Part shown: positions 19,801 through 47,810 of the stretch, one piece after another | How positions within the stretch are numbered: the first letter of the stretch is position 1 | Layout of the letters: each line of letters starts with the position of its first letter | Source: Eutreptiella sp. 'Long Island Sound 2002' | Lineage: Eukaryota; Protista; Euglenida | Assembly (NCBI GenBank): GCA_964036045.1 | Contig: OZ038378.1 | Coordinates: forward strand, 183,210,001 to 183,274,000 | Direction of reading: 5' to 3' | Length of the DNA: 64,000 nucleotides | Position numbers and translations under genes: made by a program | Notes under the pieces: model-generated | Databases searched by the model: none | The model's input: the letters and a program-made list of their open reading frames with translations, nothing else | What the model was told of the DNA's origin: nothing

Positions 19801-20120
19801 CCCTTCCAGATCAGCTCCTCCATGGGGTCATTACCCTCCTGTGCCCCTTCCCCTTCCCCTTGCAGCTTCTTCAGCGGCCACAGAGTTGGATGCCTTCCCA
19901 GCTGCTCCAGCCAATCCTTCAGTGGGCCCGGTGTGAAACCCACTGGGAACAGGTCCTCTGAGGGGTCCTCGTCGTCCAGCAGCACCTCGCTCAGCCCTAT
20001 GCGAAGTTTGGCAGGACCAAAGCTGTCACCTCAACCACGCCCAAGCCCCAGCCTCACCAAGGTCTCTGACCCAACAAATCCCACCAGCACACGCAGGTGC
20101 ACGCACAAACAAGCGTGCGT

Positions 20121-20163
<43 letters not shown>

Positions 20164-20180
20164 CACACACGGACACACAC

Positions 20181-20241
<61 letters not shown>

Positions 20242-27964: not shown

Positions 27965-27996
<32 letters not shown>

Positions 27997-28361
27997 ATTT
28001 CCATGCCATCATTATGTCCTGTTGACTGGGTGTGGTTGCAACCCGATGAGATTCATGGAGCTGCCTGCACCTGCCTATTTGTGGTTGGTTCAGTTGCTTC
28101 GCCTCAGTCATGCCTGTCTATGTGTACATGTGTGTGTGTGTGTGTATGTGCTTGTGTGCGTGCGTGTGTGTATGTGTATGTGTGAGACCCTATCCTGGTA
28201 CCAGGCAAAAAAAATGTCCCGACAGGAGGTGTACCAAGAGGTTTCTGCTAGCGGCTATCGGCTGTAGAGTCACACCTGCCTCATTTCCTCTCTCCCCCTC
28301 ATTGTTTCCGGAGTTTGGTACTTAGTGATGCCACCTCCAACAATTGCCCACATGTCTGCAC

Positions 28362-28458
<97 letters not shown>

Positions 28459-31400
28459 GAGAGAATGAGAGAGAGAGAGAGAGAGAGGAACAGAGAGAGA
28501 CCCAAGCACACACACATGCACGCACCGTTGGAATCCGTAGGCTGCAGAATCTCAGGGCGGTGCTTCAGGTCCAGCAGCCACTGCACATCGCTGTTGCCAT
28601 CGTACTGCCTCCGCACGGCCTCGCAGTGGCGCATAGCCTCCAAATCCTTGGCATTGGGCACAAGTTTTGGGTGTACGCTATCCCCAAGACCGCGCTCCGT
28701 CCACGTGCACCACAGCGCCGCGCTGTGCCCGTGCGGCTCCGTCACCGCTGTCGGGTTGGCCCCGGCCGCCAGCAGCTTCTGGAGCGCGTCGCGGTTGTGA
28801 CACAGGGCCGCGTGCGTGAGCAGCAACACGCTCTTGGCGTCTGAGATTGCAAAGAGCGCAGCGTGCCCGAGGGCCGGGGGCGTCGCGTCGTCGAGGGCGA
28901 GCTCGTGCCGCAGCAGGTCCGCGTCAAAGTCGTGCCCGTAGGAGATCGCCGTCATGACCTCCGCGAGCAGCCCGTCCGTGAACTCGTCGTACGCGTGCGG
29001 CTCCTTCCGGCGCGCCTTCAAGTGATTCACCAACTGCTCCGTCTCGTTCTGCTGGTCCTGAGGCCGCACGGACGGGCACTCACGGGCCGATGCCCGGCCC
29101 CACGGTCCCTGACCCGCAGATGGGGCACCGTGGGACCACGGGGACCTCTTGAGGGCCTGGTCGGCCAACAGGCAGTGTGTTTGGCCCCAGAGGCGGTCCA
29201 ACGGGGTGGCCGTCTCGGGACACATGCGGACTGCGATTTTTGGGACTGGGGGATCCAAAAATTCGACATGGGTCATTTGCGCACTTTACTGAGGCGCATG
29301 GAGTGAGACACCCCCGTTGCAAGGGTCTTGGCAGGGCCTCAAACGCCAACAACAGATGAACGGTCTCATTCGAGGCCCCAATCAAGCCTTTTTTGTGATA
29401 CGGGGGGGGGGTCTTGGAGGAGGCAGGCACTGCTTTTGTCCTACCCCTACCCTAAGGGGGGGGGCGGTCCAGTCGAGGAGGCAGGCACCCACTCACCGCC
29501 TTGTGCACCTCTAACAACATCCAGCTCAGGGGTGGAATAGATATTTCAGTTTGAAACTTTTCCCCCATAAAATCTCCACCTTGCCCAGCCTGTTGCATGA
29601 ATTACCATAGCGCCCTAGATTCGAACCCAGCACCCCTGGGGTGCAGGTATACTATAGTGCCGCTAGGGTACTTACCAGATCTGGCAACCCACTGCTGAAT
29701 ATTTTGGTTACAAATATTTCCCCCAAAAAATCCCAGCCCACTCTTGGCCTACCCCCACCGGGGGGGGGGGAGGGTGATTCCGCTGAGGGCACCCAGAATT
29801 TCACAAAAGGCAGGCAGGCACCCCCCCCTGGGGGAGGGTATCCAAGGCACTAAAAAAAGGCTTGGCCCCAATGTAGTGCAGGGTCCGAGGGAAGCTGCTG
29901 ACCCCCCCCCCCCTTACCCCTTGTCCAAGACAGTGTGGCTCAGGTGCTCCCACAGGTGAGAACCGTACAACACTACCTTTGGAACCCCATGGGGTCTAGC
30001 AACCCGTAAATGACCACAAGTCAAGAGACGTTTAGCCCATGGCTTGCATGTTGTCAGAAGAAGTGGTTTTTGGGGGGGCAAAAAATGTTTATTTCATGTG
30101 ACAACGATGTGTATTTTGCTCCACAGGTGCTGTTCTCCCTGCAAAAATGTTCACTTTCATCAACATCAACATTTTACCACCACTGGACACTTCTGACACC
30201 GCCATCCCCCCCCCCCCCCGTTGCTTTTTCAAAAGCGATGTTGTTCATTCATCACAACACTTGTCCAAAACCCCCTCCTGCCCTGGTGCAGTCCCACTCA
30301 ATGAAATAGCTTCGTGCCCCCCTGCCCCCCCCTCTCCCTGCCCTCTGCATGGACCCCTTCCGCCCCACCCCCCACCCCCTGTGCTTCAACAAATCCCTCA
30401 CAGAACAAAATGCTCCCGTGGCGCAGCAGAAGGACGGACAGTCTGGGCAGGGTGCACCAACAGGCAAGGGACGTCGGCCATCCAAGTTGACCCGCTGTGC
30501 GCTGTACCATCAGCAGCAACGGTCTGCAGCAGCTGCCGCGCATGCTGCTCACGGACTGCGACCTGGACGCCGTCAACACCCCCCGGCCGGTACCATCCCC
30601 AGCGGGCGGCACTCCCCAAGTGACGTGGCTGTGGGTGTCGGGCTGGCCTTGTCGGCGGTTCACGTCCATTCGAAGGAACGAGCAGCGCTGCCTTCGATTT
30701 TGCTTTGATTGTTTTTGTGGCGTTTCCAGGCGCCAGCAGCACCACCAAACGTGCGCAGTTAGAGAGGGGGGCCGGGAGGGGGGGTTGGCAGCAGACAAAG
30801 GTGGCCTAGGCCGTGCGGGTCTGCCAGCCGTGGCAGGCCTGCGAGGGGTCAGTGGAACACCCCGAGGGAGGGGGTCCTGCAAGCACCGCAGGCTTGCCAG
30901 GCATCAGCGCACCCTCCCACCCCGACCATCACCTGCCACACGACCCCCCAACACCACCGGCCCGCCCGGACGACCGCCGGCAATCCCTGCACCAACCTGC
31001 GGCCATTGCCATGTGGGCACGGCCACGGCGGCACGGGATCGGGGGGCACGGGGCAGCACAACACCGCCCGACGCAACACAATGAGGCATACACCCGCGGA
31101 GGGTAGGGGAGCGAGGGGAAGGCGCAACACACACACACACGCGCGCGCGCGCTCGCGCCCTGACGCCGACCGGTTTGGCGTGGTATTGGGGCAGGACGAT
31201 TTTGCGGCGAATGAAGAAACAGGGGCCGTGCGGGACCAGCGCAATGCTTCGGCATGCACAGGACACAGGCCCAACGGGCTGCGTTTATGAGGGGGAGGGG
31301 GGGGGGGCTTTGGGCCCTAAGACCGACGCACTCAAAAAAGACCCACTTTTGGACTCGGGTAAAATCACATTTTCTTTGACGACGCGATCCCTCGCAAGCC

Positions 31401-34400
31401 CCCCCCCCCCCCCCCGAACCTCCGGAATTAATTAATTCAGAGTACGGCGACAGTAAGAACTGCCCTGCATAGCCCCAGAGGGGGGGGGGGGGGGTGTTGG
31501 CATGTCACCATGGTGCGGGGGGGGGGGGGGGGGCTGTTGGGGTCGGGTATCTGAACAGGCGGCGCCACATGCGCATCACCATCCGACCCGGGCCCAGACA
31601 CGTACGCACAGGGGGCCGGCACGGCGGCACACCTCCTGCATCGAGAGCTTCCGGCCGCCTTGCCGCCTCCGGGGCTTGTTCGCCGACCTCGTGCGGTCTC
31701 GCCGGTACCGGGCCTCCTCCTTCTTGTACTGCACCTGCTCCTTTTTGTGCCGCAGCTGCAGGTGGTACAGGGGGTCCAGCCCCTTGCGGTCCGGCACGGC
31801 GGTGTCGGCGCCCCGGTCCACGAGGCGGCGGATGACGTGGGGATCGGCCTCCATGCAGGCCATATGCAGCGGCGTCCACCCATCGCCCTCCGTCTTGCAC
31901 CTGAACACCGCGAGGGAGGCCCATAGGGAACGAGGCCCACCCACAGCGTCCAATGGGTGGGGGAGAGCAATGGTCCCACGTCGCCGCCCTTGTTGGTTTT
32001 CGTTGCGACATGGACAACACCCATCCTCTGGACCTCTGCATCCACATGGCCCTCCAAAGCCACCGCGTTCATTGGCCCTCTCACGGGCGGTCCCGACAAC
32101 ACGGCCCTCTGGTGCACCGCCACGGACTCTGTAAGTGGCACGGTCGGGTGGCTGTTGGCACTGCAACATGGTGCCCTTTCAGGGTCACGGCCGGTCACCC
32201 GTGGGGGGAGTCAACAGCCCATTCAGCCCAACGGCGGAACACTGGTCATGCGGTCCCATCCGTAGCTCAATCACATGGACGACTACCTGTTCATTGGGTG
32301 ACACGCAACGCACCTTTCCTTCCGCAGAGCTGTCACTCTACCGGCGTCCACTCGCCAATACTGATGGCACATGGATCCCCCTCCCGATTGTCCAAGCTAC
32401 GCCCGGCCCCAAATCAATACGCTCTCTGCGCCCCACGTGGCTTGCACGCACCGCAAGGGGCGGCTCCAAATGCAGCCTGCGGAGTCTGGCAGTTGCATCC
32501 CATGGCCCCTGAAAAACACAGTGCCATCTACGAACTTCTCGAACATCCACCAGCACTTTACCTGAGGGACTCATCTGTGGCTAACAGGTCCAGCCACCGG
32601 TCGCACTCGTCTTGGCCCATCACGGGATTCTGCAGCGTGTAGAAGAGGGGGGTCTTGCCCTCCTTCGTGGTCAGCTCCACCAGCGACTTGTCCTTCACCA
32701 CGTGTTCGAAGACGAACGGGAATCCTTCGGGTGAGGCAGCCGCGAGGTGGATCGGGGTCTCGCCCCCGGCGTTGGGGGAGAGGTGGAGCGCGAGGTCACC
32801 GCTGGCGCTGCTGAAGCCTGAGATACGGGGCAAAGGGCTGAAGGTAAAGAGTCATGGGCATCAAATGGGTCCCGTGAGTCCACCAAGGCTCCAGCTGCGC
32901 CTGCCTCACAGCCTTCGTTACTTTCTGTCCAGGTCAAGCGCCACGTGGCGTCCAGCTGCCTCATTGCCACTGAGGTTTGCGTTGTACTTCGCTCCTCCTT
33001 CCCCATCCCTACGGGTTACTGGCCGGGGTTCTGGGGCTCACGACCGGGTTGGGTGTGCGTACAGGGGGGGGGGGGGATATCGTTTCGGGATAATTTCGTG
33101 GGGAAATTTCGTCGTTAAGGAAGGTGGCAAAATCTCTGGCGAAATCTGGGGGCTTTGGCAGTGCAGCGTGTGCGTGAGGCAGTGTAAGCTTTGGGATTTG
33201 CAAGGGGGGCGAATTTTTCCCCTTCCGAAATTTTCCCCGGCGAAATAATCCCCACACGAAATTATCCCCCCCCCTCTCTGTAGGGGTCATCCACATACCT
33301 GTGCGTGCAAGTGCTGGCCCTATTCGTCCCACACTGGTTGCGGGCGGCGGCACGGGGTGTGCCATTAAGGCTGAGTGAGTATGCCGGCTGGTACTGCCGG
33401 GTGTACGTATTTGTTCGCCTTTTGAGGAGGGAATCCTCCACATGTGGATGGATGGGTTGGTTGTCCACCCGTTGCGGTGGAGCTGAAGGGGGCGGGTTCA
33501 AACATTGCGAGCTTGCAACAGTTGCAGCATGGCGGGGGGGGGGGTGCATCGAGGCTGGGTAAGTGTGCCATTTGGTACATCTAGGTGTTCACACGGGTGT
33601 GAGCTCTTAAACATGAACTGTTCACAATGCTTGTCCCGGGTCTCTGAGAAATGCATTGCTAATAGGTGAGAGTGGGACAGTTGTCCCTCTACTCACAAGT
33701 GCTGCTTCTGCCCCTTGGCATCCCTCTCATGCCGGCGCCCCAGTCAACGGCGTGCAGGTCTCGAGTTCTCCAATCAACCTGCGCAGTGGCTAAGGGCAGC
33801 CCCGGTTGTTCTGTGTGTCGTATCCCGGGCCCTTTTTTTGTTGCCAGCCCGTTCAAGCCCCCCCCCCCCCCCCACCCCATTGTCTCTCCACACTGACCTT
33901 GTGTGGTCGTGTGTACATCGACACTGATAGACACCGGGGGTTCACTGGCGAACCAACGGCGGTTGGTGATCACTACCCGCTGGCAGTTGATGGTAACCAC
34001 CCTCAGACCGCAGCCGCAGGTACAGCTCTGGCCATGTCTGTGCATGGGCCAGACGCGGCTCCAGACGTGGTGGGGCTGTCCTTTAGGCTTGAGGACGGCC
34101 CTTGGGGCAACAGAGTGTTGTAAACACAACACACGTGAAAGATCAGACGGAAAACGAGAGCCAGACAAACGGTTGCAGTGCGTGCGCATCGCAGCTACAG
34201 GGGATACCGCGTGCAAGTGCTGCAGCGGTGATACATAGTCCCAAATGATCTGAAACACCCCCAAGTCCGAAATTGCGCAATCGTAATCTTAAATTAATTT
34301 TCCATCTAGGCACTTCTTACCGTTACCGTGTGTGCATAGAGTGCAAAGAGTCCCCCACCCCCCACCACATACACACGAAGCAGTGCAGCCTATGCACTGT

Positions 34401-37400
34401 GCCTTCAGAAACGGGGAGGGGGGGCGGGCTGGGCCATAAAACAATAGGCCGGTTGTGGAGGATGTAAGAATAGCTCCCGGGCACTCGGCCAGATCGGCCA
34501 ACTGCTGCTGCCGGGGAGTCGCCACAAACCCGCGGCGTTGAAGCCCTGTGTTGATGAAGATCACCCGGGGCCATGTCACACCCAGGCCCCTTTCACTCCT
34601 GCTGGGTCTCCAGTCGCCCGCATGACGCGCCGCGCGCGCGCCGCGTCCAGTGCTCATGTCGGCGATCTCAGGCGGTTGGTGCGGGGCCTCCTGACCGAGG
34701 CCTGGGTCATGCCCCTGCCACTCCGAATGCGTGTCGCGTGGTTTCAGGGGGGGGGGGGGGGGTTAAGGCTTGCCTCGGCAGCGGCCAAACCCCTGGATCC
34801 CACCCAGACCGAACGCGCTCGATGTCCCGCGTCCGCGAGAGGGCCCTCGTTCCAGGGGCACAAGGGCCCGGGAAGCTGGTCCTGCACTGTGCCGTGGGGC
34901 GGTTGGGGTGCTGCAGGCGAAGTGCGATGGACGGAACCTCCGGAACACCGGCGCAAACCCGTCACCAACGGCGTCTGGGCAGGTGGTGGTTCGTGCCTGG
35001 CACGCCCCAGAGGGTGCCAGGGCTGCTTTTAGGGGGTGGCGGTGGCGCCGAGTTTTAGGAGCCAAAGAAAATTGTTGATGAGCTGAAGGTCCCGACGAAA
35101 ATTTGGTCCCTCTTTTAAAGGGAGGGGGGATGCCCCCCCCACCCCCCAAGTAGTGCCGAGTTGTGAAAAGGAGCCCTGGTGCCATCCCTCGAGGGAGCAG
35201 AGACCCCACTCCCCACAACAAAGCTGCAATGCAGTCGGGGATGCGTGTGTGCGTGCGCACGTACGCGCGCGTGCGGCCGTCCGCTGAGTCCAACGCTGTT
35301 GACTGGGGGGAGGGAGAAGCCCCCAATGCCTTTGCCAACGGGTCCGGTGCGGTGGAGCCGACACCTGCGTCGCCGTACGCGGAGATGAGTTTGATGAGGT
35401 CCTGCTCCGTCACGCCCCCCGGCACGCGCTGCGGCGCGCGCGCGGCGGGCGCACGGCTCACCGTCCGCCGGAGCACCACGTGCAGCGCGTTCGCGTCGCG
35501 GTCGTTCTTGACCCGGACCTGCACGGCCGCCAGCGCCGGGCCCGGCACCTCCAGGAGGGCCTTGACGGTGGCGTAGCAGTGCGCCGGGTCCGCCTGCGTC
35601 ACCAGCGCCTGGTGCAGCGGGCTGTCGCCGCTCTTGTTCAGCACGCACAGCGTGGCCTCCACCTGCTCCGGGAGGTACGCGCTGCAGAGGCGCGCCACCA
35701 GCGGCCGCATGGCGCACACGCCGTCCGTCCGCGCCGCCGCCGCGTGGAGGGGCGTGTCGTTGGTGCCGTCCCGCTTCATGGGGCTGGCGCCGCACCGCAG
35801 CAGCGCCTCCACCACCGCCACGCGGCCGTGGCGGGCCGCGAGGTGCAGCGCCGTCTGCAGGTACGGCTTGCGCGCGTGCACGGGGACGCCGATGAAGACG
35901 AGGACGTGGACCATGGCCGCAGGGCACCAGGCGGAGGTGGCCACCAGGTGCAGCAGCGTGACGTCCTGCATCTGGAACCAGAGCATCAGCCCCACGAACC
36001 AGCCGATGACCCCCGACATGTAGTAGATCCCCAGGTGCGTCCAGCGCGCCATGTTGCACAGCAGCTCGTCGTGGGAGAAGCCCCCCATCGGCAGCTGCCC
36101 CTTGGAGCTGAGGAGGATGGAGTGCTCGATGACCTTCCAGACGAGCATCGCGAGGGCCCCCACGTACATGCTGGCGAGCGGCAGCACCGCGCCGACGACG
36201 CGCCACGGGACGAAGATGAAGGCGCGGCGCAGCAACGCCACGAGCTCGTTCGCCAGACCATTGGCGCATCCCCACACCAATCCGAACCCCATGTAGCTGG
36301 ACCCTGCGGGGTGAGTGAGGGAGTGAGGGAGGGAGGGAGGGAGGGAGGGAGGGAGGGAGGGAGGGAGTGAGTCAGTGAGGGAGGGAGGGATTTGAATTTG
36401 GAGTTGGATTTGGAGCACACAGAGTGCTCCTCAAGGGGCCATGACAGGCACCCGCGCTCACTGCCACCGAACTCAACAACTCACCAAACCCGGATTTTGG
36501 AGTCTGGGAAATGGGGAAAATGGCCAAAATGGAGAAAAGTGGAGAAAAATGGGGGGGACTGGGGGGGGGGGATAGTGGGCATAGCACACGGGATGTGGGT
36601 TATGGAGGGTTGTGGCGGGACCTGGTTGAGGAAAATGGGACGAAAATGGGAGAAAATATTCGAAAAAATTTTCAGTCCCGTTTTTCTCATTTTTTCTGGA
36701 GGTTGAAGATCTTCCCACAATTCCCTTTGTAAAAATCGGCACACCGTGCTCACCGACAGAAAAAATGGGAATTTTGGTCACTCAACCGATACTTACTGTC
36801 ACGGCGGCTAGTGCGGATACTTGCCATGAGTGCTGATGCATTCCCCTAGCCTGCCAAGCTGCTGGGAGAGGGCAGGGCCTCCACTGCCTCCTGACCTATG
36901 CGGCTGTAATTGCCTCTCCGCTTCTCCGGCTGGCCCCCGGGGGGTCGGCCAGGGCACCCCCACTAACACCAGGTGCCCACTCCCATCTTCAGTGATGGAT
37001 GGCGGAGTTCCTGGGTCCAGCCCCCATGCGCTGCTCCACTCCACACCCAGTCCCTGTCACGGACTTGGGGGTAGTCAATCCCTTGTTGCCCACGGTCCGT
37101 GTGTGCCTGTGGGTGGGTGTTTGGGGGGTACCAGCGTGACCGGGTCCACAGCTGCGCCATGCCTCAAATATCCCTCTGGAGCGGCTGTTCCCCTTGGGCC
37201 AGGTGGCTGGTCAGTTTGGCATGCAGATGCCAAGGCACTCACTGAAAGTGGTTTCCCGCACCCCATTTGGGTCCAGCGCACCGGGCTGCCCCCCTTCCTT
37301 CTCCTCGGGTCCAGGGCTGGGCCCATGCCTGCGGTGCGCTCTGCGGTGTGAGGTCGCTGAGGAGAACAGTGGATGTGTGGTTGGCCTTGAGAGGGAGGGA

Positions 37401-40400
37401 GGGAAATACGGAAGGAGTTGCAGTGGACCAGGGGTGTCCTTAACGGAAAAAAAAAGAAAAAAAAAGTGTTCCGGTACCAGTTTTCCCAAAAAAGCCCGCG
37501 GGCACTCCATGTGCTCAACCATGGTTGGTGGCAGTTGGCAGTTGGCGGTTGGCGGCGGTTGGCGGTTGGCAGTTGGCAACTGGCGGTTGGTGGTGGTTGG
37601 TGGTGGTTGGCGGCGGTTGGTGGCTGGCGGTTGGTGGTTGGAGGCGGTTGGCAGTGGTTGGCAGTTGGCAGTTGGTCGCCACTGGCGGTTGGCGGCGGTT
37701 GGTGGCTGGCGGTTGGTGGTTGGCGGTTGGTGGCGGTTGGCAGTTGATGGGAGTTGGCGGTTGGCGGTTGTCCCTTGGGGCGGTCCTTAAGGGCTGTCCT
37801 TAGCAAAAAAAAAAAAACTCGTCCCTTAAGGACCCCCCTGCAGTGGACCAAAGCACAGCAGAAGGTGTGCAAACTGCCTGCCTGCCTGCCTGGGACTGTC
37901 AGAGGGAGGTAGGGCCATGAGAGTGAGATGAAAGGCCATGGAAAGTCCACTGACATGGAGGTATGGAGGTACCAAGGGGAGTGTCATAGGAGTTGTGCGC
38001 TATGCCACACCTGTCAAGAGGAGATGAGGCAGCGAGAGCGAAACGAAAGGCTATGGAAGGTCCTTTGACATGGAGGTATGGAGGTCCCAAAGGGAGTGTC
38101 ATGGGAGTTGGCAGGTCACTGCACGAGGAAACAACAGGACAGCGGCAAATGAGAGCCGAGTAACAGGCAGTGTATGAAACAAAATACAACACACAACCAC
38201 ATAAATGGTTCCGGTCTTGGCATAGCGCGATGCCTATGACACTCCCCCTTGGTACCTCCATACCTCCATGTCCAAGAACCTTCCATGGCCTTTCGTCTCG
38301 CTCTCGTTCCCTAACCTCCCCTGGACACTTGTGGCATAGCACGCACAAACACATGCAAAGCATGTGTCACGCGGGCATGCAGTACATTGTTGCTCTTGAA
38401 TATCCTGCTGATCCAAGTGGCGACCTTGGACAATCCTTCTTGGATGCCTTTGACCATCTCTTGACCATTTTGTTCATTCCTGGGGTGGTGCCCAGGCCTG
38501 AGCGTTGCTAGTTCCTTCTTGATAGGGCACTGGGCTTGGGTTTTGCCTTTGCTCCTTTATGCTAGTTGCTCAGCTCCACCAGCGTGCATCTCAGTCATAT
38601 CCTTGTATCATGGTGGTGTGTTGTTGTTGCAGCCGGCTGTTCTCCATGTCAGACTCCGCACCTGTCATCTTGCCCTCTCTGTTTCTTGCTCCCGCATCGG
38701 CAATAATCAACCAAAGAGGTACAAATATGGACTTCGTATATCAGCAGGTATACATACCACACCACACAGGGAACAGCGGGGAACCTACGATGCCCCCCAG
38801 CTCATTCCCAGCCACCATTGTGGCCGAGCACGCATGCAGCCCGAGCAACAAGCAGGTAACAAGCAAGTTGCGAGTCACTAGAGTACTGTGTACACACAAA
38901 ACCCCGACAGGTTCAGCTCCCAGTACCAGCTGGGGTGCTTGGACTTTCGCTCAAGGGGAGGGGGGGGTCATTGTAGCCCCCTGGCTGGACACCCCAAGCC
39001 AACCTAGGAACGTCCCAAGTTTCAATGGAGGGAGGAGGCAGGGGGGGGGGGGGAAGCTGCTCCAGGGGGCAGAATGGGGACTGGAGGGGCACTTACTTAG
39101 TGAGACTACACCGAGGCAAAACTTAACGCTAACCCTAACCCTCACTCACGGACTGGTGAACAACGGCAATTGCATACCTACTGCTTGATGCCCAGGGGCA
39201 AGGTGGGGGGGGGGGCGGTTGAAAGGAAAGCGGGACACTTACTTGGGGTTAGGGTAACTAGATCAAACTCTAACGAGAATTGAATATTGGGACCGAGCTG
39301 GTGGGGGAGGAACATCGTCTAGGAGACTTCAACGACAAATGAGCCATGCACTGAAAAGCGGATGAGAGCGGCTCAAAAGGGGCTCAAAATGAGTTGTATT
39401 CATTGGTTTGGGCATGACAGCTGGATTAGGATCATTCTTGAAAAACCATGGTTTTGACCTGTTTTTGAGCCATTTGTGGTCCCCGATTGGCCCATGTTTC
39501 AGGCCCTTTCGGCCTTGAGAGGGGCCAAAATTGCTCAACATGGGCTCAAAATGGGCTCACTCCACTTGTTTGTGCACCCCAAATCGTCCAAAAATATCTT
39601 TGGAAAAACACATTTTTGATCCATTTTTGACCCATTTTTGGTCCCAAAACAGCCCATTTTCAAGGCATTTTGTGACTTTGGAGTGGCCAAAATGGGTTGC
39701 AATGGGCTCAAAAAGGGCCCATTCCACTTTTTTGTGCACCCCAAATGGTCTAGGATCATTTTTGGAAAAACACATTTTTTTTTGATCCATTTTTGACTGA
39801 TTTTTTGTCCCAAAACAACCCATTTTCAAGGCATTTTGTGACTTTGGAGGGGCAAAAATGGCTTGCAATGGGCTCAAAATGGGCTCATTCCACTTGTTTG
39901 TGCAACCCAAATGGTCTAGGATAATTTTTGGAAAAACACATTTTTGACCCATTTTTTGTCCCAAAACAGCCCATTTTCAAGGCATTTTGGGGATTTTAGG
40001 GGGGCCAAAACGGGCCACCACGAGCTCAAAACGCGCCAAAAACACTTGTTTTGGGACTCCATGTGGTCCAGGAATCGTTTTTTGAAAAAGTCATTTTTTT
40101 GCACCCGGTGGACGTTGTTGACCCATTTTGGCACCCACCTCTTTGGGCCACCTCTTGCAGCTTGCTGCGGCCCATTGGGCCTAGGTACGGGGGCCTAGGT
40201 ACGGGTGTCTAGGCGTCGGTTAGGGCAATTTTGAGGGGTGGAAACCACCAAAAGTGGGTGGTTGCGGGTGGATTAGGTGCGCTTGAAAACGTGTTTTGAG
40301 CAACATAGCCCAAGATATGGAATATTTTTGGTTTGCGGTTGTGGGCGGCCAATGTGCACAAATTCTGGGGCTTTTGGGGGCCTTTTGGGGGTAGTTCACG

Positions 40401-43400
40401 GACATATTGTGGAGTTAGAGGGCCCTAGAGGGCCCTTCGGCACGGGGATATCTAGCTGCGTGTGTAGAGTAGCCACTATTTCCCTTCATTTGGCCGTTTT
40501 CATCAGGCTCTAGGGCGGTTTTGGGCAAAAAAAGGCGGATTTTGGCCCTAAATTGCAGATTTTGAAATGGAGGTCCGCCACTTGCAACGCCCGTTCCCGG
40601 CCGCCACCGTTGAGTTTCTGGCTCATACTTTGTGTGGTTGTCCCTCACACCCATAGATAGCATCCACAAAAATTTTTGGCCGAATCCGAAGCACCACGAC
40701 GGAGCTGTGGTTCCCCCCCATTTTGCGTGTGCTTGCTGCTTGTTGCTTGCTGCTTGCTAAACCTAGTGGGTCCACCCTAGACACTAAAGAGGGTCATAAA
40801 ACCAAGACCGGTTCCACCAGCTCGATGACCCTAACCCTGACCCTAAGGCTACTTAGGTAATAAAGATAACTGCATACCTGCTGCTCAATGCATATACCCT
40901 GATGAGAACCATACCTCGCATCATTCTAGCAACACGTGGTGGACGTGCATGCATCACCTTTTTCTACGTAGACCATTGCTGACAAAATATTCTCTCTGAC
41001 ACCCTCGGAGCCAATGAAAATAAGGGCCGCGGTCATGGGCAAGGTCATGGGAGCCTTTTTCCAAGCCCCCCCTGCCCCCAGTTTTGGGGGGCTCCCGTGA
41101 GCCCCCCCCCCCCCCGGCCCCTAAAGTGAAAGTCCGACTTCCCCTGCTAGGAGAGCAGGAGAGGAATAGGGTGCCAAAAGGAGAGAACGAACCAGAAAAC
41201 CTGCAAGAGTGCAAAACAGCACATGAAAACAACACCACAGTCAGCACAGTTGGATCAGGATCTACATCTGGTGCAGGGTTCGCGGCCCAGGGGGCAAGCC
41301 CCTCCCCTGCAAGAGTGCAAGCAACAGCGTGAGGGGAGGGGGGGGTTGGCCCTCCCCTGAGCAAGACACATCGCATGCAGGCACACCAACGTACTCTGCG
41401 GCAGATGGTAAATCCTCTGCGAACAGGCGAACACCAAATCCAGATCCAAATTCGGAAACGGAGGAAGGAAGGGAAAGGAAGGGAGTGAACGAGTGAGTGA
41501 GTGAGTAAGTGAGTGGGTGGGGACAGACGGAGGGAGTGAGGAGCAGTAAGGCACCTATGACAAGGTACGCCATAGTCGTGCGGAAGATGCCGTCACCAGC
41601 CTCGCGCAGAATCTGGTGGTACGTCACGGCGAGACGAGGGGTCAACGCGTCGTCGATCATCAACACGACGGAGGCCACGACGAAAACCACGAACACAGAG
41701 TAGAGCGTACCGACCGCCTTCGCAAACTCCGAGGCATAGGTCTGCACGACCCCTCTGTGCACGTGCCGCATCGCGAATCTCCCGACCTGCCGTGCCGCAC
41801 TAGTGATGCGCTGCGCACGGGTCTGGCCGAGTGGCATCTCACCGCTGAGACTCGTGCCCAAAAGGTCGGCGTTGGGGTCGAGAAGGTAGGCCTGGGTCTT
41901 GTCCACGGCAGCCACGCTACAGCGCGGCAACCACCACCAGCGGAACAGCATGCCTGCGGACCAGCTGTCGTCCGGGTGGAGGTCGTGCATCGCCCGGACA
42001 AGGCGCACTGCGGTCGCCCCGACCATGGCCAGCACCATGCCCTGCCACACCCCGTGGGGCACCAGCACGGCCACCCACTCTCCGCAGTCCAACCCGAAGC
42101 GGACGCGGGTGGCGGCGAGGGGGAAGTACAGGGCCACCGAGAACACGATGGTGATCAGCACAGCGCAGAGCTGAGAGGCAAAGAGAGGGAGGGAGGGAGG
42201 GATTCGGATGGGAGGCAGGACCCGTTTTGACTGCAGCATTGGAGACCGGTGCATTCATCATCCTTGAGGCAAAGGATCGAAGAGTTGGCAGGCCAACAAC
42301 CGCGGTTTGCGGTTCAGCCGGCGGTAACCAGGCCATTGCTTACGGACCCAGAGGGGGGGAGGGGTTGGCCCCCAGTCAGCCCCAGCTGACCCACCCACCC
42401 ACCCACCCACCCACCCGGACGTACCCCTGGGGGGGCGCAGGGGGGCGGTCTGCTCCAGTCAGCCCAGCCCAAAACCCAAGGCACACCCATGAAACCCAAA
42501 ACCCATGTTGGCTGCAGTTCGGAGGAAGGACGCCACGCCATTTGGGACCAACAGTGGCCCCCTGTACCTCGATATGAGTGGGAGTCAAAAATTCCTCATT
42601 CGGAATGCTGCCTGCTCGAGAAAGAAGATGAACACGAAGCCTCACTGCCCAAGCCCAACAGATGACGTCCTCTGCATGAACTAAAGCCAACAACTGAACT
42701 TCTGTGGTCATCATTCCCAATCCGGCACCACCCAAGACCCCCAAAAGCGGACACGGGGGGTCCACAGGGGAAAATGGCCAAAAACGCGTCGACCTACCCC
42801 CCCTGACTAAGCAATGGCCTGCTTGGGGCAAGGGCATAACCACCTGACACTAGGGGCGCAGGCCTGTCCTCCAAACGTCTCTGTTGGGGGCGAGTCAGGG
42901 GTCAGGGGGTCGGGTAATTGTACTGACGCGCAAGTGTACTGCAGATGTTGTGAAGGTGGGCGCGTCAGTGTCACGAACACGGCACTGGCATTGCCACCCT
43001 ACATTATCACTGAGGGCGCCGCCCCCATCACACGAATCAGGCATTGTCTCCTCAGTGGCGCTGCATGGATCGGTGGTGGCATATGCATGACCTTTACACG
43101 ACCCCTAGACACGGTTGCCATCGTTGGGGCACACTGAAAATGAGTGGGAATTGTAGCTGCGTACTCCCATATTGTCTGGGGCTTATCAGTGTGAATTGTG
43201 GCTGCATATACCCATGTGTGTGCGGCAGTGATCACACCACAGGGGGCGGGGGGGGCGATAGTGTGTAGGCCCGGATGTCCCCACCCCCAAAACATGCACC
43301 AACGGAGGGAAGCAGCACACAATGCACGCTTTCTCTGAGCGGGGCCCCAGGAGGGCAGAGGTTATGTAGCCGCCGTAATTTCTCATTTCGGCCGTGGCCC

Positions 43401-46400
43401 CAAGGGGAGATGTAGCGACGTTTCCAGGCCCACTTTCAGTGTGGCCCTCAATCTGCAGGGGGCATGTAGCCGTATCCAGACTCAATTGTAGTGTGGCCCC
43501 GATACAGCACAGGTTATGCGGCCACAATCCACATTGGCATTCGGTGTGGCCCCAAGGCACTTCTTCCCTTGCTGTACCACCGCCTTACTGCGCATGATGT
43601 CCACCATCCGCCTGTTGGTAGCTCCTCGATGGACTGACCTGCATCAAGCCCGCCGGGTGCCCAGGAAGCTCCCCTTTTGATCATCCAGCGGGCGGGATGG
43701 CCGCCGGCCCCCACCCCGAAACCTCACCGACAGTATGGCCCTTTCCTGAAGCCCAGGCCTCGGGGCAGGAGAGGGCGGACCGGATGAAAGGCGGTGTTTG
43801 CGACGATGCCCGGGAAGGCGCCAAGGAAGACTGCTCCGGCCAGACTCGAGGACACGTCCCCGAACGAGACCTGCCCCGTCATCACAGAACTGACGGTGAT
43901 GGACGTGTAGATGGCGAGCACGGTCCCGCAGATGCCCGCGACGGCGCCCACGCACACCGTCCGCACGAACCCGTAGCGGGGCATCCGGAGGGGCACGCCG
44001 CGGGCCTCAATCAGGTACATAACGAGGACGGGGAAGGTGACCCAAGGGCTGACAATGATGAGAATGCCCCCTGCAAAGAGGGCGACGCATCCCACGACGG
44101 TGGCACGCCGCAGCCCCTGCCGTCCCTTGTCAGGGGCACTGGCACGCACAGCGCTATCGGCACGGAAGGTAAACCAGTGTGTCGATTCGCAACGCACAAC
44201 ACCAAAGTGAAGTTTCATCGCAACATTCTTCTGTCATGTCTCCTTATCTCAAACGGCCCACGAGTTCCACTCACGCCGTTTCCCACCAAAAACGCGAGCA
44301 AGGCGAACGTGAGCAAGACTAGTGACACTGCTGACGAGTGTGCACAATCTTTCCGTGGCGGGCGAGGGGCACGGACAAGGAAAGGGACACACCCTCGATC
44401 GGAGCCGGAGGCCTGGGGGTGAGGCTGTTATGGAACTGCCGGAACGCCACCCACACCGCGACCTGGAGGGTGAACCCCAACACCCACGCGACGGCCGCGC
44501 TGCGGTGGTACCCGGCGCACAGGAGGACGAACGCCACGAGGCAGAGGCCCGCCACCGCCAGGGACTGCGCGGCCATGACGGTCAGAAGGGCCTGGTCGAA
44601 GGTCTCGGGCTGGCCGCCGTTCAGGTAACAGTACGACACGGCCCCCGAGATGTTGAAGGAGGAGAACTCGTGGGGCGTCAGCAGCGACAGCGTTGGCAGC
44701 CCCGTGGGGAGCATGCGGAAGCGGGGGCTGATCCACAGGGGCCAGGGGTCGGCGGGGTCCGGGACGGGACACACGTACGTGTAGCTGCTGGTGCGATTGC
44801 GGAGCTTCATCGCGTCGGGGCTGTCGGGCCCCGCCTCCACGTGGAGAGTGCTGGTGGTGAGGTCGGTCGGGGGGGCGGTGAGGGAGTCCCGGTACTTGAG
44901 GGCGCAGTGCTGGTTGTAGAGTTTGCTGTGCGTGAGGCTGAAGCAGCGCACCGCTTCGCACGCGGCCTTGCACTCCTGCGGTGTGCGACGCGCGGAGGCA
45001 GGGCCTTGAGACGAGCACCAGGCGGATCCCTGGTCAATGCCCCGCGCCCGCCCCATAATGTTATCCTCCGATGTCTTCTGGTGTCGTGACAGCTGTCGTT
45101 CAGTGGCTGGGGCCCGTCTAGTGCTTGTGCTTCAATGCCGGTCGGTCCCCCCTGCCCCCTGGCACACGCACGGCCCAACACAGGGGAAGCAACGGTCAGA
45201 CGGGGATCCCGTGCCTCGACAACGCCGCGCTTGCCCGACCCACCGGCGTACCGGTTCTCACGGGGCCTGGCCCCATTGCGGGAACAGTCACATCCAAACA
45301 AGACAGAAGTGGGTTGCTGTCGCAAGACACACGCTGTTAGGAGCAGCAGCGACTCTTCACAGGAATGACCCGGCCCCTTTTGCCCACGACGACCAGATCG
45401 CAAACTGAACACTACCCGCTACGTCAGCCAACCGCCAACCGCGGGTGTCCGCGCCTGGGCTGTCCTTTCAGTGAAGGCCCTCAGGACAGCCCAGAAAGGT
45501 CCCGTAGCTCAGCTGTCGTGCATTGGACACCTGGCGGAGAGGTACCCGGGTCGAATCCCAGGGGCACGGGGTGAACAACACTCGGACCGTCCTGGCACGG
45601 CACGAGTCCAACAGCTGGGCATCCACCGTTTACAACCCACGGCCCCCGTACTAACATTGGTGGTTCGCTGAACCTGTAGACCGCCAAGCAGCAGGAACCT
45701 CCCGTTTGCGCAAGCACAGCCTTGACGAAGCACGACGGCGCCTTGTTACACTTGTTCGTCTGACCGCACTTTTTGGGGTCGAGAATGCAAGAGGACGTGT
45801 TTGTCAACTACCGGCCAATACATTGGATGCTCCTTGGCAGAAGTGGATATAAAGGGGTGGGGTCCTCCCCCTCCGATTACAAATTACCAATCACGAAATT
45901 CGGCGGACCTAAAATGTGCTCCCAAGACTCCAGGGACGGGGTCCCTAATACCGGAACGTAGACCCCTCATCATGATCCCCATTACTGATCATTTCGAGGT
46001 ACGTACATGGGAAACCTTTTTTCAAAATTTTACCTCGGGGCCGCTTTGCGGCCCACTTTATGAGCCATCACCAGTCCTCACCATGAGCCATCACCAGACT
46101 GTCCTTTTCCGAGGACTCATGTGGGAAAATCGTAAGTCGTAATTCGTAATCACGGCCCCCAGAAGAGCCCCCCCACCCCAACATAACGATTGCGTCACTC
46201 GTACGTCCACCACTGACGCCCAGGACCTCACCTCACCTCACCCTCAGGACGGCGCGAGTCCAAAGCAAAGGACCTGCAGCGTCACATCGAAGCGGGACCA
46301 GATATCATAGGGCCCCGGGCGATAGTGATGGAACCCCGTCCTGTACACGGCACTGCCCCACCCCACGTGCACGGCCGACGGCTGCCAGCAGTCAGTGTGG

Positions 46401-47743
46401 TACGTGATCCCGTCCAGACCGAGCCACTGCCCGCCAAAGCCCTGCGGCACCGTCACGTGGCCGTCGGCGGTGATGGTGACCTCGACGGGGGCACCGCCGG
46501 GGGCGAACACCCGGAGGTCCCGCGGGGGCCGGTGGCCGTGCGGGAGGGTGACGATGCGCGTCGTGTCCTGCGAGATCAGGGCGCGGCCATAGAGCGACAC
46601 GCGGGACGAAACGTTGGTGGACTGCAGGGGCCAGTCGGGGTCCTGCGCGGCGCTCGACTCGAGCTGGCGGCCGACCCCGACAGCGAAGGCGATGCCGCTG
46701 AGGCTGAGCCACGCCGCGGCCGCGGGGCCGGAGGTCCACCGGACGGCCCCATCGGGCGCGACGGTCACCTCCGCCGGGCCGGTGTCGGCGCGGACGGTGA
46801 ACACGCGGCGCGCCGGCGGGCGGCGGCCGCGCGGGAGGACGGCGACGGGGGTGACGCGGGTCGCGTTGGCCACGGCCCCTGCGAGAGCAACGGTGGGGCC
46901 GTCGGGGCCGTCTGGGCCCCAGAGGGCGGCGCGAGGGTACTCCGGTGCCGGGGCCGTCCAGGGGGGCTCCAGCGGCAGGGGCTCGGCCGCCGCCAGAGGG
47001 AACCGGACGGTGTTCAGGAACACCCAACGCGCCCCTCCCCCGGGGCCCTGCCACGTCAGGCGGCCGTCCGGCTCCACGTCGACGCGGGCTGGGCCCGCGC
47101 TGGTTGCGACGGCGAAGACCAGCCGCCCCTGGGGGCGGTGCGGCGCGGGCAGGACCGCAATGCGGGGGCCGGCGCCCGCGGCGGCCCTCACGGACCCCAT
47201 GAGCGTGACGGTGTGCCCCTCCCGCCGGGAGCTCGGCCGCAACTGGAACCGAGGCTGGACCGGAGTGGCGCTGGGCTCCCACCCTGGCCCCAACGGCAGC
47301 GCCAGCTGCGCGGCACCACCGCCGTCGGTGTCGGTGTGGGTGTCGAGGTACTGCGTGGGGTAGGGCAGGACCTCGACCTTGGCCTGGAAGTAGGGCTCGC
47401 GGGGCCACTGCACCTCCACGGCGGGGGGGCGGGGCTGTGCCTCCGGGTGCTGCTCCACCACCACGGCCTCCCCACTCCAGAATCGGAGGGAGAGATTCCC
47501 GGAGCGCCCGTGCAGGTCGTACCGCCAGTTGCAGGCCCTTTGGTGGCGGCACCTCTCGTGCAGGAGGATGGCGCTCGAAGGGGTGTCGCCGCAGCTGTCG
47601 TCGAGGCTTTTGTTATAGCGGTACGCCGTGTCGCCGCCGAGCATTTGGATCTTGACGCGGCGGTGGTAGAGACCGGCCCACGGGATGCGGATGTAAACGA
47701 CCACTGCGGCGCAGAGCCAGAACAAGTACAACACATAGTTCAT
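16593..47743 (-). CDS. Spliced gene (12 exons, ~2105 aa): putative multi-pass membrane receptor with ectodomain repeats, PAN-like domain, ankyrin repeats and C-terminal R-S-E ADP-ribosyltransferase
   Basis: Exons 47743-46274, 45029-44391, 44125-43781, 42170-41555, 36303-35365, 32817-32562, 31900-31633, 30562-30508, 29230-28526, 19996-19476, 19034-18804, 16865-16593. All introns are GT...AG; cumulative phases (0,0,0,1,1,2,0,1,1,0,0) agree at every junction; total 6318 nt is divisible by 3 with no internal stop. Exon 8 and the exon 2/3 boundaries are the least certain, and extra symmetric exons in the large introns cannot be excluded. Confidence 0.78.
17560..18093 (+). mobile_element. Probable retroelement fragment carrying one arm of the 202-bp inverted repeat
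   Basis: Coding-like remnant ([12 protein letters not shown].., reminiscent of LINE RT 'PK.K..RPI'), continuous with the repeat arm at 17886-18087. Assignment is weak. Confidence 0.35.
18183..18590 (+). repeat. Dispersed ~400-bp repeat, copy of 13223-13650, inside intron 11
   Basis: Colinear, high identity. Confidence 0.9.
18804..19034 (-). CDS. Receptor-ART exon 11: ART catalytic core (STT and E-x-E)
   Basis: 77 codons: [61 protein letters not shown]. Acceptor atccag|GCG; donor GAG|GTACCC. Symmetric, phase 0-0. Confidence 0.93.
19476..19996 (-). CDS. Receptor-ART exon 10: N-terminal half of ART domain (YT..lN.aLR helix and catalytic Arg in VFRG)
   Basis: ORF 19440..19985: [18 protein letters not shown]...FWRPFIYYV...RWVFRGL. 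Acceptor gcatag|GGCTG (phase 1, fits exon 9); donor CAG|GTCTCA. Confidence 0.9.
20120..20240 (+). repeat. (CA)n microsatellite
   Basis: Direct observation. Confidence 0.98.
20506..23040 (-). mobile_element. 5'-truncated non-LTR retrotransposon (zf-RVT plus C-terminal extension) in intron 9
   Basis: ORF 22249..23028 has [21 protein letters not shown] and [11 protein letters not shown]; it frameshifts into ORF 20969..22390. The 3' end reads ..CCTCGTTAATAGTACA with no poly(A). Confidence 0.85.
23060..24290 (-). mobile_element. Second 3'-end copy of the same LINE family
   Basis: 23061-23215 is ~95% identical by eye to 20507-20660, with the same terminus. The 5' limit is approximate. Confidence 0.7.
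24480..25560 (-). mobile_element. Retroelement ORF1/N-terminal-like coding remnant
   Basis: Pro/Ala-rich frameshifted ORFs 24881..25495 ([12 protein letters not shown]..) and 24528..25097 (..[10 protein letters not shown]). No splice sites fitting the host gene; lies among TE fragments. Confidence 0.45.
25385..25530 (+). repeat. Long poly-G/G-run tract
   Basis: More than 25 consecutive G plus further G-runs. Confidence 0.95.
25570..26590. mobile_element. Non-autonomous element with 13-bp subterminal inverted repeats (ACCGAGCTGGTGG), flanked by TTAGGG-like repeats; copy 1
   Basis: ACCGAGCTGGTGG at 25601-25613 and its reverse complement at 26490-26502. The interior is homologous to the reverse complement of 39290-40850. 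No long ORF. Confidence 0.75.
26750..27575 (-). mobile_element. Third LINE 3' end (27184-27575) joined to a putative element 5' region/ORF1 start (26750-27170)
   Basis: TACTATTAACGAGGG at 27185 with diverged downstream similarity to 20507; ORF 26750..27019 [18 protein letters not shown]... Confidence 0.5.
28365..28500 (+). repeat. (GA)n microsatellite just inside the 5' end of intron 9
   Basis: Direct observation. Confidence 0.98.
28526..29230 (-). CDS. Receptor-ART exon 9: linker and degenerate ankyrin repeats
   Basis: ORF 28299..29276: [39 protein letters not shown]. Acceptor atcgcag|TCCGC; donor AACG|GTGCGT followed by a (TC)n tract. Confidence 0.85.
30508..30562 (-). CDS. Receptor-ART exon 8 (inferred 55-nt micro-exon, [18 protein letters not shown])
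   Basis: Inferred to bridge phase 0 (exon 7 donor) to phase 1 (exon 9 acceptor). Bounded by tccag| and |GTACAG, with GC-rich codon-like content. The pyrimidine tract is weak. Confidence 0.5.
31633..31900 (-). CDS. Receptor-ART exon 7: ankyrin repeat plus basic helix
   Basis: [35 protein letters not shown] within ORF 31576..32169. Acceptor gttcag|GTGC (phase 2); donor GAG|GTGTGC (phase 0). Confidence 0.88.
32562..32817 (-). CDS. Receptor-ART exon 6: ankyrin repeats
   Basis: ORF 32558..32833 with [11 protein letters not shown] and GKTPLFYTL. Acceptor tctcag|GCTTC (phase 1); donor CTCAG|GTAAAG (phase 2). Confidence 0.9.
33062..33275. mobile_element. MITE-like element with imperfect terminal inverted repeats
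   Basis: GGGGGGGATA..GGGATAATTTCGTGGGGAAATTTCG versus ..CGAAATTTTCCCCGGCGAAATAATCCCCACACGAAATTATCCCCCCC. Confidence 0.55.
35365..36303 (-). CDS. Receptor-ART exon 5: last TM segments and ankyrin repeats 1-5
   Basis: ORF 34763..36418. Acceptor after a (TCCC)n tract, ccgcag|GGTCC. Ankyrin motifs [54 protein letters not shown]. Donor GCAG|GTGTCG. Confidence 0.92.
36315..36390 (+). repeat. (GGGA)n microsatellite forming the polypyrimidine tract of the exon 5 acceptor
   Basis: Direct observation; (TCCC)n on the coding strand. Confidence 0.95.
37520..37770 (+). repeat. Degenerate (GGCGGTTGG/GGTGGTTGG)n low-complexity repeat
   Basis: Visible short-period G-rich repeat. Confidence 0.85.
37917..38307. 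mobile_element. MITE-like element, ~74-bp inverted arms plus an internal direct copy
   Basis: Arms at 37917-37990 and 38233-38307 (GACATGGAGGTATGGAGGTACCAAGGGGAGTGTCATAGG / reverse complement); third copy at ~38052-38105. Confidence 0.75.
39280..40850. mobile_element. Copy 2 (inverted) of the subterminal-inverted-repeat element, with internal ~165-bp tandem repeats
   Basis: ACCGAGCTGGTGG at 39292-39304 and CCACCAGCTCGAT at 40814-40826, followed by GACCCTAACCCTGACCCTAA. Internal repeat units start near 39548, 39711 and 39878. Confidence 0.75.
41555..42170 (-). CDS. Receptor-ART exon 4: TM segments and loop
   Basis: ORF 41262..42254. Acceptor (tccc)n..ctctcag|CTCTGC. Hydrophobic [18 protein letters not shown] and [20 protein letters not shown]. 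Donor ATAG|GTGCCT, phase 1. Confidence 0.86.
43781..44125 (-). CDS. Receptor-ART exon 3: three to four TM segments
   Basis: ORF 43724..44218, strongly hydrophobic ([30 protein letters not shown]; [17 protein letters not shown]; [15 protein letters not shown]). Acceptor ACAAG|GGA (alternative CAG| at 44116, same phase). Donor CCG|GTCCGC. Confidence 0.8.
44391..45029 (-). CDS. Receptor-ART exon 2: PAN/apple-like Cys domain, linker and first two TM segments
   Basis: ORF 44319..45056. Acceptor GACCAG|GGATCC in phase 0. [20 protein letters not shown] motif, then [18 protein letters not shown] and [18 protein letters not shown]. The donor position (GGT|GTGTCC) was chosen to fit phase and is less certain. 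Confidence 0.82.
45498..45570 (+). mobile_element. tRNA-like SINE head (degenerate A and B boxes) in intron 1
   Basis: GGTCCCGTAGCTCAGCTG (A-box-like) and GGGTCGAATCCC (B-box-like); no clean cloverleaf. Confidence 0.4.
46274..47743 (-). CDS. Receptor-ART exon 1 (490 aa): N-terminal signal/anchor plus 3 tandem beta-rich repeats
   Basis: ORF 46244..47743. ATG is preceded by a pyrimidine tract and CAG|CC. Hydrophobic start [18 protein letters not shown]. Repeats [30 protein letters not shown] / [30 protein letters not shown] / [30 protein letters not shown]. Donor CAG|GTCCTT, phase 0. Confidence 0.88.
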
Positions 47744-47745
47744 GG

Positions 47746-47810
47746 CTGCAGAAACGTGGAGCGGCCAGGCACACTACGCAGGGGAAGAGGAAGGGACACA
47801 CAAAAAAGAC
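47746..47810 (-). promoter_or_regulatory. Polypyrimidine tract plus AG acceptor immediately upstream of the ATG (candidate spliced-leader or 5'UTR splice acceptor)
   Basis: Minus strand reads ..tgtcccttcctcttcccctgcg..gtttctgcAG|ccATG; the AG is 2 nt before the start codon. Confidence 0.5.

Follow-up and report, generated by a model that had tools for sequence, protein, structure and literature searches.

A minus-strand gene in a 64-kb window of the genome of the euglenid Eutreptiella sp. 'Long Island Sound 2002' (64,000 nucleotides; contig OZ038378.1 of assembly GCA_964036045.1, positions 183,210,001 to 183,274,000; coordinates below count from the first letter of this window) encodes three tandem repeats related to the receptor-binding protein (RBP) heads of phage tails. 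We consider it likely that this triplet of phage-type heads is the exposed ligand-binding part of a receptor-like membrane ADP-ribosyltransferase (ART). Each repeat is a beta-sandwich of ~95 residues homologous to the C-terminal RBP head of siphophage and actinophage tail proteins, and the three copies, fused by linkers of ~9 residues, would most likely pack into one compact pseudo-trimeric head. The chain would begin with a signal peptide or anchor, followed by a small region that contains Cys and by the head, and would continue through ~11 membrane helices and ankyrin repeats to an R-S-E-type ART. Because the head lies behind the signal peptide or anchor and ahead of the helices, the ankyrin repeats and the ART, it would most likely face outwards and bind a ligand; its three-fold packing, its outside location, the class of its ligand and its coupling to the ART are the predicted elements of this scheme.

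Three tandem repeats in one coding exon

The open reading frame (ORF) at 46244..47743 (-), 499 aa long, holds three tandem repeats of ~100 aa (Table 1). A sequence-only reading of this DNA had placed them at the same residues, within a single intronless exon of 1.47 kb, and both claims held. Smith-Waterman scores were 165 for repeats 1 and 2 (z 18.7), 92 for repeats 2 and 3 (z 13.1) and 65 for repeats 1 and 3 (z 7.6), as judged from 500 composition-preserving shuffles per pair with mean scores of 28-36; none of the 500 shuffles reached the observed scores. Smith-Waterman alignment with shuffles was needed for this, as a blastp self-comparison of the ORF did not detect the repeats. When a profile derived from them was run against the six-frame translation of the whole window, it recovered these three copies and no others.

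The repeats are kin to phage receptor-binding heads

The same reading had proposed a kinship with siphovirus and actinophage tail or receptor-binding domains, which is supported here by searches of PHROGs, profile searches of the PDB, hhalign and structure comparison. The best profile and fold matches are phage and viral proteins rather than unrelated eukaryotic domains. In PHROGs, phrog_3639 ('minor tail protein') was matched with E-values of 1.1e-15 by the ORF, 1.3e-16 by the triplet and 4e-7 to 5e-4 by single repeats, and all three repeats land on positions ~376-454 of the 474 in this profile. A word-indexed protein search with the ORF returned no match. When 1.84 billion representatives were searched exhaustively for the family with HMMER, 552 proteins scored E<=1e-3, among them 221 at E<=1e-10 and 50 at E<=1e-30.

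The 123 three-repeat modules that make up our alignment A1 match PHROGs widely: 110 of them hit phrog_26792, 102 phrog_3639, 101 phrog_3285 (minor tail protein), 93 phrog_13022, 50 phrog_7127 (receptor binding tail protein) and 36 phrog_11445, with E-values down to 3e-29 (1.6e-26 at best for phrog_3639). Relatives score 19.7-25.8 bits (E 1e-5 to 9e-4) against PF08931, the Pfam family of the Lactophage RBP C-terminal head domain, and so stay below its gathering threshold of 26.7 bits; the query itself does not match PF08931 even at E<=1 and thus falls short of the same threshold. A sub-threshold match of relatives to PF18755 (RAMA) overlaps the same strands as the head units and was taken as noise. 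Searched against all PDB sequences, the A1 profile gave six hits at E<=1, five of which are lactococcal phage RBPs: 3d8m (0.016), 3da0 (0.031) and 2x53, 1zru and 2wzp (0.23). Finally, hhalign of a 111-unit profile (A3) with ORF18 of phage p2 (GQ979703) gave P = 2e-4 over 38 columns.

The predicted fold is that of a phage head domain

AlphaFold2 modelled aa 142-453 with A1 at a mean predicted local distance difference test score (pLDDT) of 91.3 and a predicted template modelling score (pTM) of 0.89, and all five models reached at least 90.6; when run without an alignment, it gave a pLDDT of 35 and no usable fold. The model was compared with VIA-align, exhaustively, with 48,161 PDB representatives. 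Eight chains were matched at Z>=8, all of them viral, and seven of the eight come from phage tails, as receptor-binding proteins or, in one case, as the knob of a tail needle. The strongest match is gp15 of Listeria phage PSA (6r5w) on repeat 1, with Z 13.9-14.1 and a root-mean-square deviation (rmsd) of 1.8-1.9 Å over 99-100 aa, followed by the tail needle knob of Pseudomonas phage Pa223 on repeat 2 (9nxp, Z 12.5), the bIL170 head (2fsd, Z 10.1-10.3), TP901-1 (2f0c and 4ios, and also 3ejc, Z 9.8-9.9), a TP901-1/p2 chimera (3da0, Z 9.3), p2 (2wzp, Z 8.8; 1zru, 9.3) and Zav_19 of the virophage Zamilon (7qrj, Z 8.5). Next below Z 8 come NMV_189 of Noumeavirus and the fibre heads of adenovirus and reovirus, at Z 6.7-4.5. 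A second VIA-align comparison agreed with this result. Foldseek gave a probability of 1.00 for the same phage entries; the PDB entries that it ranked first over the whole chain, TolB and further beta-propellers with a template modelling score (TM) of 0.15, were rejected as spurious. With 96-97 residues aligned, the predicted fold of the repeats corresponds to the head domain of p2, TP901-1 and bIL170, whose scores are well separated from those of unrelated chains.

The whole three-unit model also superposes on other predicted models, the relatives' models coming from other pipelines than ours. It matched the minor tail protein of Microbacterium phage Truong in BFVD (A0A6M3SZL4; TM 0.84, E 2e-17, 18% identity), two Actinomycetota clusters of the ESM Atlas (TM 0.87 and 0.86 over 303 and 299 residues) and an Atlas cluster with eukaryotic (Chlorophyta) members (TM 0.81); the Atlas matches extend over 279-303 residues.

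Head units come in threes

Repeated rounds of profile searching over the 150 top hits delimited 888 units. For 134 of 151 proteins the number of units is divisible by three, and it reaches 33 at most. Proteins carry 3 units (91 proteins), 6 (21), 9 (4), 12 (2), 15 (9), 18, 24, 27 (3) or 33 (2). The gap has a median of 9 aa within a triplet (5-95%: 8-13) and of 27 aa between triplets; the query, with linkers of 8 and 9 aa, holds one triplet. Solved relatives act as homotrimers, with their ligand sites at the interfaces between heads (PMC6115969). From this rule of three, the pTM of 0.89 and the trimeric nature of all solved relatives, we think it fairly probable that each triplet imitates the phage head homotrimer within one chain, with a putative three-fold packing.

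The units of one triplet are 0.36-0.38 identical to each other, which fits equivalent environments or concerted evolution. The comparison gives no evidence for an ancient fixed triplet with orthologous positions 1, 2 and 3 throughout the family, as the identity between units at the same position in different proteins (0.30-0.33) is not above that between different positions; positional identity is seen only within the euglenid clade. The triplet as what appears, from these sequences, to be an obligate state of the domain is new here. In the literature we found no paper that uses 'pseudo-trimer' for RBP heads or that describes these findings.

One of three units keeps the family motif

In the A1 profile search of the PDB and in the hhalign alignment of A3 with p2 ORF18, the best-conserved motif of the family, R-V-D-V, falls on F-H232-I-D234-I of p2. 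His232 and Asp234 lie at the p2 head interfaces where, together with Arg256 and Trp244, they hold glycerol or a sugar (PMC6115969). The aligned part is R-V-D on H232-I-D234, and the equivalent of p2 Arg256 is not aligned. Across the wider family, R-x-D occurs in 70-80% of units at each position, and 122 of 246 triplets have it in every unit. In the euglenid clade (the query and its paralogs P0002 and P0004) it is kept in unit 1 only, units 2 and 3 having E/Q/H-V-T/A/C/S instead. Because only repeat 1 keeps R-x-D, the head is probably asymmetric, with one canonical predicted site for a carbohydrate or another surface polymer.

The exon belongs to a transcribed and spliced gene

The start Met of the ORF aligns with those of P0002 and P0004. 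An RNA contig of 309 nt (record 10 of X5, an estuary metatranscriptome run) joins 46454..46273 directly to 44974..44848 with no mismatches, and past intron 1 the frame runs on into an ORF that ends at 44319. Other RNA contigs match 47437-47599, 47506-47649, 47603-47746 and 44532-44746 with 0-1 mismatches, those at 47437-47599 and 47603-47746 being exact. As RNA contigs match the exon and one of them joins both sides of intron 1, the gene is transcribed and spliced in nature. The contig that matches up to 47746 has 7 extra letters that do not fit the genome, and the genome reads AG at 47747-47746; this suggests that the 5' edge of the exon is set by this AG, as either a cis-acceptor or a spliced-leader site. 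Intron 1 is the one intron confirmed by RNA, and the later exon joins are taken from colinearity with P0004.

GC content at third codon positions (GC3) is 0.91 in the exon and 0.93 in the repeats, compared with 0.76-0.97 in the other exons, in agreement with what the sequence-only reading had noted; intron 1 has a GC of 59%. Composition therefore gives no sign of recent transfer.

Table 1. Coordinates of the gene and its parts in the 64-kb window
Feature	Position (strand)	Description	Basis
First coding exon	46274..47745 (-)	1470 nt from ATG 47743 to last base 46274, 490 codons, ends on a complete codon	
N-terminal hydrophobic segment (aa 4-22)	47678..47734 (-)	predicted signal peptide or signal anchor	hydropathy 1.87
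Region before repeats (aa 24-146)	47306..47674 (-)	conserved Cys; sequons N44, N83	paralog alignment A4
Repeat 1 (aa 147-249)	46997..47305 (-)	RBP-head-like unit; keeps family motif R-V-D-V at 47075-47086	
Repeat 2 (aa 255-353)	46685..46981 (-)	motif altered to E-V-T-V; conserved sequon N293-A-T (46859-46867)	
Repeat 3 (aa 360-448)	46400..46666 (-)	most divergent of the three units; motif E-V-T-I	
Linker after repeats (aa 449-490)	46274..46399 (-)	conserved Cys452	
Intron 1	44976..46273 (-)	1298 nt, GT..AG; donor GT 46273-46272, acceptor AG 44977-44976	
Exon 2	44364..44975 (-)	in frame; Cys-rich juxtamembrane stretch, then first predicted membrane helices	frame, paralog tblastn, RNA contigs, hydropathy
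Rest of gene	16611..44104 (-)	further predicted membrane helices, ankyrin, ART, C-terminal exons	colinearity with P0004
Ankyrin exon	35342-36298 (-)	Pfam Ank, E 6e-16	
ART exons	19476-19955 and 18798-19082 (-)	18798-19082 alone: PF03496 (ADPrib_exo_Tox) and PF01129 (ART), E 1e-4	
C-terminal exon	16611-16895 (-)		tblastn of paralogs

Further RNA matches lie around the exon. Contigs without mismatches cover 48245-48613 and 49055-49260, upstream of the first coding exon, and could stem either from a separate transcript or from additional 5' exons of this gene. An element of ~50 nt at 48238-48287 recurs, with 4 mismatches and 1 gap, in several RNA contigs of all three estuary metatranscriptomes, where its flanks are unlike on both sides; it is probably a short dispersed repeat that many transcripts contain. 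An Rfam scan of 44000-50500, which includes this element, gave no match. Inside intron 1, 36 nt at 45698-45733 match, with 3 mismatches, an abundant RNA contig of ~2 kb found in all three metatranscriptomes, which is likely a chance or repeat match to a transcript of another organism.

The triplet heads a predicted multi-pass membrane ART

The paralogs P0002 and P0004 are encoded on two contigs of one assembly, ERZ25074135, which we take as an assembly of the genome of the window. P0004 is a protein of 1866 aa read from one uninterrupted ORF of 5.6 kb (L003, contig ctg6626) and, like P0034, carries ankyrin repeats and PF01129 (NAD:arginine ADP-ribosyltransferase). Paralogs P0004, P0034 and P0002 were searched against the window by tblastn, and all searches were made exon by exon, the exons not being joined. 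On the minus strand, at least 11 successive segments between 47728 and 16611 match residues 4-1861 of P0004 in the order of that protein. The gene of the window is 43-46% identical to P0004 and P0002, and it is a further paralog of a euglenid family of membrane ARTs with the order triplet, multi-pass region, ankyrin repeats and R-S-E ART, a layout that is kept in at least three paralogs. Among the neighbouring long ORFs on the minus strand, Pfam recognised the ankyrin exon only.

For the paralogs, hydropathy predicts a hydrophobic segment at the N terminus and, from the ectodomain to the ankyrin repeats, 10-11 helices. The segment at aa 4-22 is conserved in the paralogs and is predicted as a helix, with a pLDDT of 74-89 even without an alignment. 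At an identity of 39-46%, the paralogs share sequons N44 (N-K/R/T-S/T), N83 and N293 (N-A-T/S, in repeat 2) as well as several Cys, and N293 is present in all five paralogs that align there. Exon 2 begins with a Cys-rich stretch holding more sequons. Conservation of the sequons and Cys among paralogs supports exposure to the secretory pathway, and the triplet is probably on the extracellular side.

The family varies in other respects. The region at aa 24-146 is conserved among paralogs, but its C-x-G-x-x-C-P-P-P is lost in the query, which has a 12-residue stretch in its place, and kept in the others. Paralog P0002 (L012) starts with MGCC, resembling an N-myristoylation or palmitoylation signal, directly before the hydrophobic segment; the other paralogs are without it. 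Gene structure also differs sharply between paralogs, as the copy in the window is interrupted by 10 or more introns within 31 kb, some of them 5-9 kb long, whereas P0004 is intronless. A weak zf-RVT match at 22252-23085 suggests retroelement remains in one intron.

Triplets occur in bacteria, phages and protists

A pattern scan with a tighter alignment (A2) found six loci in bacterial metagenome-assembled genomes (MAGs; L004-L009), and the same scan over IMG/VR gave no match. The MAG relatives belong to Gammaproteobacteria, Alphaproteobacteria/Rhodospirillales, Magnetovibrio (Pseudomonadota) and Planctomycetota. On a bacterial contig with 32.5% GC (L002 1-21808, holding P0008), four giant ORFs stand in tandem (>1335, 1919, 2416 and 1502 aa); at least two of the encoded proteins carry RBP-head-like units, and one of them also Tectonin repeats. 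The gene of another relative, P0096, neighbours a phage integrase on a bacterial contig from soil. The triplet occurs in an actinophage too, in the predicted structure of the Truong minor tail protein. Among eukaryotes, the dinoflagellate Effrenium voratum has P0049 (CAJ1386416.1), whose gene spans 50 kb, and three more of its proteins fall in the same 90%-identity cluster.

The largest relatives are giant proteins of 2,300-6,500 aa (P0001, P0003, P0005-P0007 and P0009-P0014; loci L001, L010 and L011) with 5-11 triplets, that is 15-33 units, in a row. Neighbours of L001 have ankyrin and WW domains, while L010 and L011 (JGI sample 3300012469) are single-gene contigs.

A FastTree phylogeny was built from 129 triplets, leaving out the exact duplicates P0151-P0153 and incomplete triplets; metagenome proteins without labels supply most of its rows. 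The euglenid copies group in a single clade (SH-like support 100) on a long stem (0.98), with the Effrenium pair P0049/P0136 as weakly supported sister (84). Both clades sit in a poorly resolved region together with rows from bacterial MAGs, and 52 of the 126 branches of the tree are open. The giant multi-triplet proteins form their own half of the tree. No euglenid triplet is more than 32-34% identical to a non-euglenid one. As the fold is abundant in phages and bacteria and patchily distributed among eukaryotes, it is plausible that eukaryotes acquired it long ago from a phage or bacterium; the tree assigns neither a donor nor a number of transfers.

Weighing the function of the head

Several observations weigh against a phage-type head serving as the outer part of a receptor-like ART. 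In the euglenid copies, R-x-D is lost from two of the three units, as is the Cys pair of the wider family (C-x-L-S-G ... C-R-P); together these losses could reflect relaxed or changed binding. The query ORF and its single repeats have no match in Pfam, NCBIfam or the PDB sequences, tblastn of the query against 50,697 phage genomes gave none either, and no solved chain among the PDB representatives matches more than one repeat. The RNA contigs come from environmental metatranscriptomes and none from culture, and the species-labelled runs X7-X9 (~4 Mb each) contain no part of the stretch. The positive charges lie C-terminal to the hydrophobic segment at aa 4-22, an arrangement unusual for cleaved signal peptides, and the count of ~11 helices is taken solely from hydropathy, so that the topology is a prediction.

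The best alternative keeps the same membrane protein and makes the triplet an adhesin for prey bacteria, other cells or matrix, with an ART that works independently of ligand binding. Relatives of 2,400-6,500 aa with 9-33 units, accompanied by Tectonin, ricin-B lectin or CBM6-like parts, do have a typical adhesin or lectin architecture, and the giant multi-triplet proteins probably serve in such attachment. The euglenid proteins, however, join a single triplet to a multi-pass region and to an enzyme inside the cell, a receptor-like layout found in at least three paralogs, and we regard a pure adhesin as rather unlikely.

Less probable still, with only a slim chance in our estimate, is that the triplet lies in the cytosol or in the lumen of an internal compartment and acts as a protein-protein scaffold, its likeness to phage heads being a shared fold without ligand binding. 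The lost Cys pair and R-x-D motifs, the positive charges after the first hydrophobic segment and the MGCC start of P0002 would suit such a scaffold. It is harder to square with the three N-x-S/T sequons and several Cys conserved across paralogs, with the Cys-rich stretch and its further sequons ahead of the first membrane helix, and with the position of the ankyrin repeats and the ART, which are normally cytosolic, after an odd number (~11) of predicted helices.

Although, among named proteins, those of phages and bacteria come closest in profile searches, a misassembly of bacterial or phage DNA into the contig, or a dead untranscribed relic, is extremely improbable given a GC3 like that of the neighbouring exons, a frame open for 490 codons, in-frame splicing of the exon to the next one in RNA through a GT..AG intron, and paralogs of the same layout on two other contigs of ERZ25074135, with colinearity to P0004 over 31 kb.

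What a receptor ART would mean

More speculatively, and in our judgement with a small share of the probability, a bacterivorous (mixotrophic) alga may use a single-chain phage RBP head as an outside sensor and protein ADP-ribosylation as the inside output to detect bacteria or other cells. In that case a viral tool for recognising bacterial cell-wall glycans would have been fused into one chain and recruited by eukaryotes, in dinoflagellates either independently or by transfer. The euglenid proteins would then form a new receptor class, which could be called 'receptor ART', and the fused triplet would be a widespread, so far unnamed lectin module of bacteria, phages and protists. Our literature search found no paper that links euglenids, ankyrin and ADP-ribosyltransferase.

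The phage RBP head is a well-studied device for glycan recognition and, to our knowledge, has solved structures only as a homotrimer on viruses. The fused triplet occurs in hundreds of uncharacterised cellular proteins, and no curated family covers it. It thus offers a handle on what the very large membrane ARTs of euglenids sense and on how cells re-use viral attachment modules. A single-chain trimer with one retained site would also be a natural scaffold on which RBP-type lectins can be studied or engineered with no need for trimerisation.

Comparison with known systems

The heads of adenovirus fibre knobs, reovirus sigma1 and sigmaC, Zamilon Zav_19 and Noumeavirus NMV_189 share with the repeats the general fold of trimeric viral attachment heads. 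They differ in a much weaker structural match (8.5 for Zav_19, 6.7-4.5 for the others) and in the lack of a sequence signal, and are distant analogues or very remote relatives only.

Minor tail proteins of actinophages (PHROGs 3639, 3285 and 11445; phage Truong) provide the best profile matches, and the Truong protein superposes on all three repeats. The likeness is confined to the last ~70 of the 474 positions of phrog_3639, however, and the tail-attachment parts are absent from the euglenid protein, whose gene is a spliced eukaryotic one outside any phage tail gene cluster.

The triplet proteins of cellular genomes (those of the MAGs, P0008, the Actinomycetota Atlas clusters, Effrenium and the giant proteins) resemble the query in the three-unit module itself, with linkers of ~9 aa and 22-34% identity over the query length. 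Most of them differ in having a Cys pair in each unit and R-x-D in two or three units, and many hold 2-11 triplets; the continuation into membrane helices, ankyrin repeats and an ART was seen in none of the non-euglenid triplet proteins that were checked.

The RBP heads of siphophages of Gram-positive bacteria (6r5w; 2fsd; 2f0c/3ejc; 1zru/2bsd; PF08931) are among the best matches in solved structures. They have the same beta-sandwich of ~100 aa (Z 14.1-8.8, rmsd 1.9-2.8 over 96-100 residues) and a weak, consistent sequence similarity that includes the alignment of the family R-V-D on p2 H232-I-D234. They also have three heads per functional unit, a correspondence that for the euglenid protein depends on the predicted three-fold packing. 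No part of the exon matched the RBP shoulder or neck regions in profile and structure searches. The siphophage head is a single C-terminal copy on each of three chains, behind a shoulder or stem and a neck, whereas in the euglenid a single chain carries all three copies, which lie at the N-terminal end of a membrane protein of a eukaryote.

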